From positions 1 to 64,000 of the forward strand of contig CBFDEM010000025.1 of the NCBI GenBank assembly GCA_965603825.1: DNA of 64,000 nucleotides, read 5' to 3'. Each line of letters begins with the position of its first letter. Positions within the stretch are counted from its first letter, which is position 1. Positions 37,739-43,494 of this stretch are shown piece after piece. A model generated the notes under the pieces. It worked only from the letters and a program-made list of their open reading frames with translations. It ran no database searches and had not been told where the DNA came from. The translations under genes and the position numbers were made by a program. The stretch is from Blepharisma stoltei ATCC 30299 (lineage: Eukaryota; Protista; Ciliophora).

Positions 37739-39052
37739 TTAGTTAGCTTTATTAGTTATTTTAAGATTAGCGATTACACTGATCGTTTTATTTTTCAAGT
37801 CAAATCTGTATAAATCATAATAATAATTGAGAAAATATATCGCATCATCATATAAAGCCTTATATGAAAGAAGAAATGAATTTTTGCATGAATTTGAGCC
37901 TATATTTTGCCAAGAAAATGGATCATTAATTTCGCTTTCGAAAATTCTTCCTCCAAATTCTATCAAATATCCTCTATTGTTTCCTGTAAAAATACTTTTT
38001 TGAATGTCTCCAGTAACATCCATACAATCAAAATAGGAATTAAGATCAGGACAATATCCATGCAATTTCAAAGAATGATACCCCACTACCAGCATGGTAT
38101 CCCCAAGAACAGCACAGGAGCAATAATCAGTGGTTCTTGGAAGCTTTGCTATTTTTAACCACACTGACTTATCAAGATCAAATTTTTCCCAAAAATCGCC
38201 TGACCCACCAAATGCATAAACATAGCCTTTATAGTAAGAAAGCGCTGTAAAATACGTTAATGCACGGGGAGGGTGCATTTTTATAGTAAAACTAAATTTA
38301 ATTGTAAAAGCTTTTGAGCTTGAATTAGAAAGGCAAAAAATTCCATTGTTAGGTAGTAAGCACATAGAAGCATAAAACTCAGGAATTTGGGCTGTATGAG
38401 TTAAATTTGTTGAAATGTGGGGTTTTGATAAATCAAAAATATAAACAGTAGGATCCGATTTTTTTAAATAAACAAGTTTAGTAGAAAGCATTGAGAGTTC
38501 ACTATTCAAATTATGCTCAAAATTAAAATTTGGATCAATTGAAAATAGCTTGCCTAAAGAGAAAATCACTCCTTCATAATCTTTAAAAGTTGTGATTTTT
38601 CAGTTTCTAGCATAATCCTCTATTGCTTCTGGGGGCATTTTCAAAATAGTCTCAATAAATGTAGGGTCTCCATATTCTGTGATTTCAGTCAAATTTTCAC
38701 ATAAACTAATTATTTCTTCACATTTTTTATTGACTATACCGACATTTAAATTCATCAAATACATATTGTGAGCAAAGCCATAAACTTCATTATTTTTTAT
38801 TTCATTTCAATATAAATTCACTTTGCTCTTCAATTCTTCTGCGCATCTCCTTAGCATTTCTCTGCTTTTTTCATTAATAACTGTAAATATACCTTTAACC
38901 TCATGTATTTCATCTATATTTTGATGTTCACCTGCATGACTATTGCATATAAATTGTTTGAGTCCTAGGCATTTGCAAGTCTTTATAGGCTTTTCTTGAC
39001 ACTCTTCAATATGGCATCTAATGCTTTCTATTTTGCTCTCATGAAATTTCAT
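37739..39052 (-). CDS. Kelch-like repeat protein K1 with N-terminal Cys/His (B-box-like) motif; intact
   Basis: RCHIEEC..CKC..FICNSH, YYKGYVYAFGGS, EKFDLDKSVW. Open frame of 437 aa with TGA=Trp. Confidence 0.85.
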
Positions 39053-39280
39053 ATTTATTAATATTTTGTTATAGATTACAAGGAATAATACTTGACTATA
39101 ACTCTGCTGGAGATTTAGAAGTAAGATCCTTTTATTTGGAACTTCTAAAAATTCAGCTATTATCATAATTTAATCTCTCATTTTTATTTTGATTTTCTAA
39201 AATTAATTCATAATATTGACTAAGCTATAGGATTGTTCCTTTATTTAAGCTGCTAAAATTATCATACTTAAGCAGCTTTA

Positions 39281-40581
39281 TTAGTTATTGTTAAGATTAG
39301 CGATTACATTGATCGTTTTATTTTTCAGGTCAAACCTGTATAAATCATAATAATAGCTGAGAAAATATATCGCATCATCATATAAAGCCTTATATCAAAG
39401 AAGAAATGTTTTTTTGCATGAATTTGAGCCGATATTTTGCCAAGAAAATGGATCATTAATTTCGCTTTCGAAAATTCTTCCTCCAAATTCTATCAAATAA
39501 CCTCTATTGTTTCCTGTAAAAATACTTTTTTGAATGTCTCCAGTAACATCCATACAATCAAAATAGGAATTAAGATCAGGACAATATCCATGCAATTTCA
39601 AAGAATGATACCCCACTACCAGCATGGTATCCCCAAGAACAGCACAGGAGCAATAATCAGTGGTTCTTGGAAGCTTTGCTATTTTTAACCACACTGACTT
39701 ATCAAGATCAAATTTTTCCCAAAAAGCGTTTGACCCACCAAATGCATAAACATAGCCTTTATAGTAAGCAAGCCCTGCAAAATACGTTAATGCGCGAGGA
39801 GGGTGCATTTTTACAGTAAAACTAAATTTAATTGTAAAAGCTTTTGAGCTTGAATTGGAAAGGCAAAAAATTTCATTGTTAGGTAGTAAACACATGGAAT
39901 CATAATAGTCAGGAATTTGTCCTGAATGAGTTAAATTTTTAGAAATTTGGGATTTCGATAAATCAAAACTATAAATATTAGGATCTGATTTTTTTAAATA
40001 AATAAGCTGAGTAGAAAGCATTGAGAATTCACTATTCAAATTATGCTCAAAATTAAAATTTGGATCAATTGAAAATAGCTTGCCTAAAGAGAAAATCACT
40101 CCTTCATAATCTTTAAAAGTTGTGATTTTTAAATTTCTAGTATAATTCTCTATTAATTCTGGGGCCATTTTCAGAATAGTCTCAATAAATGTAGGGTCTC
40201 CATACTCTGGGATTTCAGTTAAATTTTCACATAAACTAATTATTTCTTCGCATGTTTTATTGACTATACCGACATTTAAATTCATCAAATACATAGTGCG
40301 GGTAAAGCCATGCGCTTCATTATTTGTTATTTCATTTCAATATAAATTCACTTTGCTCTTTAATTCTTCCGCGCATCTCCTTAACATTTCTCTGCTTTTT
40401 TCATTAATAACTGTAAAAATACCTTTAATCTCATGTATTTCATCTATATTTTGATGTTCACCTCCATGTCTGGCGCATATAAATTGTTTGAATTCTAGGC
40501 ATCTGCAAGTCTTTATAGGCTTTTCTTGACACTCTTCAATATAGCATCTAATACTTTTATTTTATTCTCATGAAATTTCAT
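39281..40581 (-). pseudogene. Kelch-like copy K2, 1-nt deletion near the start (pseudogene or homopolymer error)
   Basis: Near-identical to K1. Start-to-MYLM distance is 287 nt versus 288 nt in K1; one T is missing in the run near 40556. Confidence 0.65.
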
Positions 40582-40788
40582 ATTTATTAATATTTTGTTA
40601 TGGATTACAAGGAATAATACTTGACTATAAGTAAGATCCTTTTATTTGGAATTTCTGTTATTTTTATATTTTAATCTCCTATTTTTATTTTGGTTTTCTA
40701 AAATTAATTCAGAATATTGACTAAGCAATAAGATTTTCACACTATTTAAGTTACTAAAATTGTCATACTTCAGCTATTTGTCAATTAG

Positions 40789-41670
40789 TTAGCTCTCTCT
40801 TATTTCATGTCTCCATGCCGAAGGATCAGAAAATAAAGCCTGCAATAATCTATGATGCCATTCGTGACCGGGATTATGGGCCGTATAAGCGGCCTGAAGA
40901 GGGGCACCCGCAAGATATAGATCACCGACGGCATCCAGGATTTTATGACGTACATATTCATCATCAAAGCGCAAACCGTCCGGATTCATGACTTTCCCAT
41001 TATCAATGACAACAGTATTCTCCAGAGAAGCTCCTAAAGACAGCCCCTTATCATAAAGCTTCTGCGCGTCTTCATAAAAACCAAAAGATCGGGCAGAGGC
41101 AATATCATTTTTAAAGGCATCCAGTCCTCCTGAAAAATAACCTATGTATTCCCCCATCCCCTGTCTGCCACCAAAATCGAAAGACACGTGTGCTGAGAAC
41201 GCTTCGGCAGGAGAGAGTTGTACGAATCGTCCCTCTGTCCCTTCAAGTCGTACATCCTTCAGGACGCGCAGGAAAGATCGAGGCGTGGATTGCTCCACCA
41301 GCCCAGCAGCTTCTATCATATGAATAAAAGGAAGAGAACTCCCATCCATAAAAGGTATTTCTGGTCCTTGCAGCCTAACCAATGCATTATCAACTCTACA
41401 TATTGCCAAGGCTGCCATAAGATGTTCAATGGTGGCAACTGTGGCGCCTTGATTGTTTCCTAATTGGGTGCACATGAATGTATTCACGACACTGGAAAAG
41501 CGGGCGTGGATTTTTGGCTTGCCCTCCAAATCGCTTCGCTCAAAAACAATACCATGTCCTTGAGGTGCAGGCTCCAGCGTCATTTCCGAAGATTGTCCTG
41601 AGTGCAGCCCTACGCCGCGGCATTGAAAAGGTTGACGAAAAGTTTGTTGAAAAGGTGTAGAATGATTCAT
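40789..41670 (-). CDS. lpxC: UDP-3-O-acyl-N-acetylglucosamine deacetylase, bacterial type (293 aa)
   Basis: GVGLHSG, TIEHLMAAL, EIPFMDGSS, ARSFGF, GASLEN, LRFDDEYVRHKILDAVGDL (HKxLD zinc motif), GH. No introns, no TGA codons, GC clearly above host. Confidence 0.96.
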   Translation of the reverse strand: MNHSTPFQQTFRQPFQCRGVGLHSGQSSEMTLEPAPQGHGIVFERSDLEGKPKIHARFSSVVNTFMCTQLGNNQGATVATIEHLMAALAICRVDNALVRLQGPEIPFMDGSSLPFIHMIEAAGLVEQSTPRSFLRVLKDVRLEGTEGRFVQLSPAEAFSAHVSFDFGGRQGMGEYIGYFSGGLDAFKNDIASARSFGFYEDAQKLYDKGLSLGASLENTVVIDNGKVMNPDGLRFDDEYVRHKILDAVGDLYLAGAPLQAAYTAHNPGHEWHHRLLQALFSDPSAWRHEIRES

Positions 41671-42231
41671 TATGATGTCCCAAAATACATTAATTATAAT
41701 TAATCAAAATTTTATCGTGTATTCAATAGCTTTTTTATTTCGAAATATTTCTAGGAGTGAGAAGTGAAAGACTGGGAATACTTTCTGGCTTCTTCCAGGC
41801 ATTGGGTTGCGTCAGGAGCAAAAATTTGTTTGACCCACTAGGTTTCTGCATGTTTCCAAATAGAGGACCCGGGGCAATCCCCAGAGTTTTTAAATCTTCT
41901 ACTGATAGTGGAAAAACGGGTTTTTCCCAAGAGAGTTGGAGTTGCTCAAGCAAGATGTGGTTATAACCCTGTGCGACTTGAAGTAAAAGAACGTCGCGGG
42001 TTGTTTCCAGTCCATGCTCATAAAGCAGCTCTCTACTGTCCATACAAAGGTGTCCCGCCAATTTTACCAGACTTTCCAATTCCTTCTTTTCTTTATGAGA
42101 GAATTTCAGTTCTTTTAAAAGAATATGAAGAGCCTTTTCATTATCTTTCAAAATAACTGCCAGACGAGGGAGAGCTTTGGGCATGATGTGAAATTCCTGC
42201 TCAAGCTTTATCAACTTTTCTAATTGTTTTA
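40795..42231. other. Bacterial DNA insertion (~1.44 kb) in kelch copy K3
   Basis: Flanks align to K1 sequence 37745-37748 and 37775 onward. About 26 nt of host sequence is missing. No TSD or TIR seen. Confidence 0.85.
41751..42231 (-). pseudogene. 3' fragment of a bacterial CCA tRNA nucleotidyltransferase/poly(A) polymerase family gene, degraded
   Basis: WEKPVFPLSVEDLKTLGIAPGPLFG, then a frameshift. The shifted frame reads HAET*WVKQIFAPDATQCLEEARKY with TAG at 41838-41840. 5' part absent. Confidence 0.75.
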
Positions 42232-43494
42232 TACACTAATCGTTTTATTTTTCAAGTCAAATCTGTATAAATCATAATAATAATTGAGAAGATATATTCC
42301 GTCCTCACATAAAGCCTTATGTGAGGGAAAAAATGCATTTTAGTATGAATTTGAGCCGATATTCTGTCAAGAAAATGGATCATTAATTTCGCTTTCGAAA
42401 ATCCATCCTATAAATTCTATCAAATATCCTCTATTGTTTCCTGTAAAAATTCTTTTTTGAGTGTCTCCAATAAAATCCATACAATCAAAATAGGAATTAA
42501 GATCAGGGCAACATCCATGCAATTTTAAAGAATGATATCCCACTACCAATATTGTATCTCCAAGAACAGCACAAGAAAAATAATCAGTGGCTCTTGGAAG
42601 CTTTGCTATTTTTAATCACACTGACTTATCAAGATCAAATTTTTCCCAAAAATCGCCTGACCCACCAAAAGCATAAACATAGCCTTTATAGTAAGCAAGC
42701 GCTGTAAAATTTGTAAATACACGAGGAGGATAAATTTTTATACCAAACCCAAATGTAATTGTAAAAGCTTTTGAACTTGAATTCGAAAGGTAAAAAATTT
42801 CATTGTTAGGTAGTAAGTATATAGAATCATAATAGTCAGGAATTTCGGTTGAATAAGTTAAATTTGTGGAATTTGGGATTTCAGTAAATCAAAAACATAA
42901 ATTGTAGGATCCAATTCTTTAAAGTAAATAAGCTGAGTAGAAAGCATAGAGAGTTCACTATTTAAATTATGCTCAAAATTAAAATTTGGATCAATTGCCT
43001 AAGGAGAAAATCACTCCTTCATAATCTTTAAAAGTTGTGATTTTTCAATGTCTAACATAATCCTCTATTAATTCAATGGGCATTTTCAGAATAGTCTCCA
43101 TAAATGTAGGGTCTCCATACTCTGGGATTTCAGTCAAATTTTCACATAAACTAATTATTTCTTCACATTTTTTATTGATTATACCAACATTTAAATTCAT
43201 CAAATACATATTGTGAGTAAAGCCATAAACTTCATTATTTTTTATTTCATTTCAATATAAATTCACTTTGCTCTTTAATTCTTCTGCGCATCTCCTTAAT
43301 ATTTCTCTGCTTTTTTCATTAATAACTGTAAAAATACCATTCATCTCGTGTATTTCTATATTTTGATGTTCACCTGCATGTTTGGCGCATATAAATTGTT
43401 TGAGTCCTAGGCATTTACAAGTCTTTATAGGCTTTTCTTGACACTCTTCAATATAGCATCTAATACTTTTTATTTTATTCTCATGAAATTTCAT
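42229..43494 (-). pseudogene. Kelch-like copy K3, frameshifted and 3'-truncated by the bacterial insert
   Basis: 11-nt deletion near 42997 relative to K1/K2. New TAA at the insertion junction 42229-42231. Confidence 0.8.

Follow-up and report, generated by a model that had tools for sequence, protein, structure and literature searches.

Gene Content of the Locus

We analysed a stretch of 64,000 nucleotides from the start of contig CBFDEM010000025.1 of Blepharisma stoltei ATCC 30299, hereafter the window, and searched the whole macronuclear assembly of this host (41.46 Mb, 64 contigs). The strain has been described as virtually homozygous and has been kept in culture for more than 50 years; its macronuclear assembly of 41 Mb in 64 sequences, with CCCTAACA telomeres, was built with Flye from PacBio HiFi reads of up to 12 kb, and its genes are read with UGA as tryptophan (PMC9942806). 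The contig begins with telomeric CCCTAACA repeats, which occupy positions 1–2380 of the window (about 2.4 kb) and include a few irregular units.

Between positions 37739 and 43494, three kelch-like copies (K1, K2, and K3) were arranged in tandem with 88–93% mutual identity, and no relatives of them were found elsewhere in the host assembly. All three were read from the minus strand. K1 (37739–39052) encoded 437 aa with UGA as tryptophan and was the only intact copy, frameshifts being present in K2 and K3; it was used as the empty-site reference. K2 (39270–40581) carried a 1-bp deletion near its start and retained a 299-aa frame downstream of it. K3 (42234–43494) was a pseudogene with an 11-bp deletion, a 1-bp deletion, and a premature TAA, and its sequence broke off about 10 codons short of its end. 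The remainder of K3 (40640–40794, minus strand), comprising the native stop (40787–40785) and the 3' region, lay on the far side of the interruption. The 3' halves of K1 and K2 were nearly identical, which suggests gene conversion between them.

The interruption of K3 was occupied by a 1.4-kb fragment of a Caedimonas varicaedens chromosome. Its unambiguous extent was 40812–42233 on the minus strand, with 97–98% nucleotide identity, and the BLAST match extended to 40804. The insert was single-copy in the host assembly, its GC content was 43.3% versus 29–32% in the flanks, and the donor order was kept, with the cca 3' end, an 80-nt spacer, and lpxC all on the same strand. The earlier note had described a higher-GC stretch with two co-oriented bacterial genes and their spacer at 40789–42231. 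The bacterial stretch and its gene content held up, but its limits had to be shifted: the exact donor match spans 42233–40812, and host DNA takes over again at 40794.

The lpxC open reading frame (40789–41670, minus strand) encoded 293 aa and had no TGA codons. It matched PF03331 with an E value of 1.5e-92 (310 bits against a cut-off of 27) and TIGR00325 over the full domain (274 bits against a curated cut-off of 187). In an alignment to 4mdt_A, the zinc and catalytic residues (E-H, H-K-x-L-D, and the later His) were all present, and the EH, HKxLD, and GH motifs were intact. The last seven codons and the stop derived from the seam and the host DNA. The stop fell at the same codon number as that of the donor, 4 nt before the native stop of K3, and the K3 3' region now stood directly behind lpxC. 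The exact sequence of 40792–41670 (P0121) was found on two contigs in the protein collection, and the second contig may come from a separate assembly of this strain.

The AT-rich spacer between cca and lpxC (41671–41750, minus strand) was the donor's own 80 nt with two insert-only substitutions, and the GGGA that had been noted 7 nt before the lpxC ATG, a ribosome-binding-like site, was part of it. The cca piece (41751–42231, minus strand) was the 3' part of the gene for CCA tRNA nucleotidyltransferase, 163 codons of the donor's 408-aa protein, without the catalytic head. Two lesions disrupted it, a 10-bp deletion near 41853 and a Trp-to-stop change (TGG to TAG) at 41839, and neither figured in the earlier description.

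Origin of the Insert

Caedimonas varicaedens is a 'killer' bacterium that lives inside ciliates. We compared the insert with its strains at the DNA and protein levels. Identity was 97.95% to the reference genome over 1412 columns and 98.16% to the nearest metagenome strain. Across C. varicaedens strains it ranged from 94.6% to 98.2%, the strains themselves being 95–100% identical to each other, and the next Caedimonas species reached 73% at the DNA level. The lpxC product shared a 90% cluster with GAO97809.1 of C. varicaedens. The insert was colinear with BBVC01000019.1 and with metagenomic strains, where the order was pntB, cca (408 aa), 80 nt, and lpxC. Both the protein and the DNA trees nested the insert within the strain cluster (support 99/98) as sister to P0123/L007. 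On this sequence evidence, the donor is the C. varicaedens species cluster of the Holosporales. The homology search and phylogeny of LpxC bore out the alphaproteobacterial, Holosporales-like affinity that the earlier note had suggested for the cca tail, and its view of the capture as recent was supported as well.

Gene order around lpxC varied within Caedimonas: in another species (L003/L004), lpxC was followed by a YfiO/BamD-type gene and then by an SMC_N (RecN-like) gene, unlike in C. varicaedens.

Junctions with the Host Gene

Host sequence flanked the insert on both sides and matched K1, as previously claimed, and K1 and K2 represented paralogous empty sites. At the upstream junction (42232–42233, minus strand), 2 nt of TA microhomology were common to host K3 and the donor, and sequence was donor-only from 42231; the donor's bases at 42231–42229 placed a TAA in the kelch frame. 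The downstream junction (40795–40811, minus strand) was a 17-nt mixed seam, part donor-like and part host-like, with the exact donor match ending at 40812. The cut lay about 10 codons short of the K3 end and eight short of the end of the donor lpxC. Between the two anchor points K1 held 26 nt, six of which may survive in the seam, in agreement with the earlier estimate that about 26 nt of the K3 3' end had been replaced. The reported lack of a target-site duplication was confirmed, and neither inverted nor direct terminal repeats were found at the insert ends; TA was present at one end only. The microhomology and the mixed seam are what a repair-type capture, as proposed in the earlier note, would leave, and we infer end-joining repair from the anatomy of the two junctions.

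The same junctions bear on whether the insert is a retained internally eliminated sequence (IES) or a mobile element with bacterial cargo. Three quarters of Blepharisma IESs are TA-bound at both ends, about one sixth have non-TA direct repeats, and some have none (PMC9942856); the TA at one end also speaks for this idea. However, the insert lacked paired TA, terminal repeats of either orientation, and a transposase; it was single-copy, and 13–26 host bases were lost rather than duplicated. We therefore rejected the insert as an IES or transposon and regard such an origin as extremely improbable.

Of the 1261 sites of K3, 82 (6.5%) had private changes, a level five times that of the insert. This indicates that the insertion occurred well after the kelch duplication, a timing that had been put as after or during it. 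The private changes of K3 were split 50N:31S, suggesting that K3 was constrained for much of the time since duplication.

Apparent Decay of the Insert

We scored the private changes of the insert against 12 bacterial loci. The insert had 17–18 private substitutions, or about 1.3% private change, in addition to the 10-bp deletion; the strains had no gaps over the region. In cca, the private changes were 7N:0S, the Trp-to-stop change being one of the seven, compared with 24N:22S among strains (Fisher P = 0.033), and for cca and lpxC combined they were 12:4 compared with 44:54 (P = 0.032). These results suggested relaxed selection on the cca of the insert relative to the donor strains. In lpxC, the private changes were 5N:4S compared with 20:32 among strains, with omega 0.38 versus 0.19, and the 5N:4S count is compatible with neutrality (P = 0.23) as well as with constraint (P = 0.47). 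AT-ward mutation bias was considered as evidence of decay and set aside, as 12:4 versus 47:40 was not significant (P = 0.17). Because a living bacterium needs its CCA enzyme, the lesions in cca most likely arose after the transfer. Part of the private change may predate it, the actual donor strain being unsampled.

Decay restricted to the insert is the chief argument against an assembly chimera. According to that reading, the assembly would have joined the host contig to DNA of live Caedimonas contaminating the culture. Assemblers can err at tandem copies such as those of the kelch array, and the identity to living strains is high. On the other hand, both flanks belong to one gene, the kelch copies are 7–12% apart and easily resolved, a live bacterium should not have a frameshift and a stop in cca, and a 10-bp deletion is atypical as a HiFi error. 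In addition, the main texts of the two Blepharisma genome papers mention no symbiont (PMC9942806, PMC9942856). We consider an assembly chimera improbable, and we are highly confident that the insert, of whatever kind, is real.

Mutation rates measured in Paramecium and Tetrahymena are near 1e-11 per site per division. At such rates, about 1.3% private change is far beyond what some 50 years of culture should produce, which points to residence in the micronucleus; the cca deletion and stop likewise suggest prolonged residence in the host and hence passage through the micronucleus. From the rates in these other ciliates, we infer that the insert is present in the germline.

A different view is that the insert belongs to the macronucleus of one clone, was acquired from a nucleus-dwelling Caedimonas, and will be lost at the next sexual round; the capture would then have taken place either during development, at TA-directed PiggyBac breaks, or during vegetative growth. 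Caedimonas can indeed inhabit ciliate nuclei (PMC11909080), one junction lies on TA, the usual boundary of Blepharisma IESs (PMC9942856), and the strain has had its decades in culture. Against this, 18 private substitutions and a deletion fixed in a polyploid consensus would be hard to reach within 50 years, and TA is frequent in AT-rich DNA and was present at one end only. We regard a macronucleus-only insert as unlikely.

Taken together, the evidence led us to favour, as the probable explanation, a real, germline-inherited, non-functional fragment of C. varicaedens. An ancestor of the strain would have carried Caedimonas or fed on a ciliate infected with it, so that the source may have been an endosymbiont or prey, and bacterial DNA would have reached a nucleus. 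One non-mobile Caedimonas fragment would then have been captured at a double-strand break in K3, a redundant copy, and end joining would have patched it in, leaving the TA microhomology, the messy far seam, and a loss of 13–26 nt of host DNA. The fragment would sit in the micronucleus, survive macronuclear development, and now drift. It may escape excision, as the paired TA ends are absent and the insert would by now be parental macronuclear sequence.

Fate of lpxC

Under the favoured explanation, lpxC would have no role in the host. The substrate of LpxC comes from LpxA. Searches for other lpx genes, which had been suggested as a check, gave no second lpxC in the host assembly and no match there to the lpxA C-terminal domain PF13720, a search for which the control was positive in 4 of 14 genomes and in which tiny introns could hide a divergent gene. 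Since LpxA, the source of its substrate, was not found in the host, lpxC is expected to lack a host role.

The contrary reading is a germline-fixed Holosporales transfer in which lpxC is transcribed and translated as a first step of domestication. Here lpxC would have been recruited, with transcription from the K3 promoter or the AT-rich spacer and an end provided by the K3 3' region, and its product would either serve as a deacetylase or interfere with the lipid A of bacteria. It is in favour of recruitment that the lpxC frame has no internal stop in the host code and keeps every catalytic residue, next to a broken cca, K2, and K3, that its stop coincides so closely with those of the donor and of K3, and that the protein is listed in NCBI/UniRef as a predicted product. 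However, gene prediction is not expression, and an open frame could survive by chance: in simulations, nine random substitutions left the lpxC frame open 76% of the time, the indel rate of the insert would spare lpxC 55% of the time, and both together gave an open frame in about 42% of cases. The 5N:4S changes provide no test of selection, no lpxA-type gene was found in the host, and the GC3 of lpxC was 0.38 versus 0.23 in K1, indicating no adaptation. We consider recruitment of lpxC, in either use, decidedly unlikely, and the same holds for domestication at this first step; the insert probably gives the host no new function.

Comparison with Known Systems

The insert resembles the cca-lpxC locus of C. 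varicaedens (BBVC01000019.1; GAO97809.1) in gene order, in the spacer, and in 97.9% of nucleotides, and it differs from that locus in being truncated at both ends, in its broken cca, and in lying within a eukaryotic gene. NUMTs and the Wolbachia fragments found in the genomes of insects and nematodes are arbitrary fragments with end-joining junctions that are turning into pseudogenes. The insert shares these features, being cut within genes and free of mobile-element signs; unlike the Wolbachia inserts, it has a Holosporales donor and a recipient with separate germline and soma, in which much foreign-like DNA is removed during development. Domesticated bacterial genes in ciliates and the nuclear lpxC of plants are old acquisitions that have adapted to their hosts and belong to a pathway. 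The insert is like them a bacterial enzyme gene in a eukaryotic nucleus, and unlike them it is 98% identical to the donor and stands alone, with no targeting peptide or partner genes.

A 2026 preprint on five diplonemid hosts with Holosporales symbionts found no symbiont sequence integrated in the host genomes (bioRxiv 10.64898/2026.01.29.702485). That study asked the same question for the same bacterial order with a negative outcome, and the B. stoltei locus gives a positive answer from a different protist. Blepharisma is absent from the hosts in Table 1 of PMC11909080. Our literature search, which fell short of most subscription papers, found no report of a host nucleus containing DNA from Caedimonas or another member of the Holosporales, and nothing relevant on Blepharisma with Caedimonas or on a ciliate with lpxC.

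If the favoured explanation is true, DNA from a symbiont can reach the germline of a ciliate and escape elimination during development, and the locus could be used to ask whether a foreign insert of young age is treated as self by small RNAs. Blepharisma would also be a past host or predator contact of this killer symbiont, a host not previously recorded. The case is testable at once: the donor is placed to species level at 98% identity, the junctions are resolved to the base, and long reads, germline reads, and RNA-seq are public.

Search for Other Symbiont-Derived DNA in the Host Assembly

We compared 261 kb (15%) of the 1.7-Mb C. varicaedens genome GCA_001192655.1 with the whole host assembly. 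For these 261 kb of donor sequence, no second Caedimonas insert above 85% identity was found; thirteen donor pieces of 13–20 kb gave only short matches of 67–83% to conserved host genes. So Caedimonas DNA appears to be rare in this macronucleus, and a few more inserts are possible. In the RebB search, none of the controls matched.

At approximately 195.5–196.1 kb of host contig C17 (G000:C17; L023:1180-1790), we observed a fragment of an IS256 transposase that had decayed and was interrupted by stops and frameshifts. It was 77% identical to plasmids of Rickettsia endosymbionts and 80–81% identical, over shorter parts, to plasmids of Ca. Megaira polyxenophila. We rejected it as a second Caedimonas piece, since it was absent from the C. 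varicaedens assembly; by sequence similarity, it is likely a second, older insert from a different, Rickettsia/Megaira-like symbiont lineage. Together with the lpxC insert, this island suggests that past infections leave a fossil record in the genomes of ciliates.

Two further observations concerned the host's own genes. Positions 208578–209092 of contig C62 (G000:C62:208578-209092; L020/L021) matched, at 67–69% DNA identity, the donor sequence immediately upstream of cca, which is the pntB site in other strains, and this is most likely the host's own ancient transhydrogenase. A weak Mutator-family transposase match (G000:C45:459153-459494; L025) lay inside a long host-code reading frame and is possibly a domesticated host transposase.
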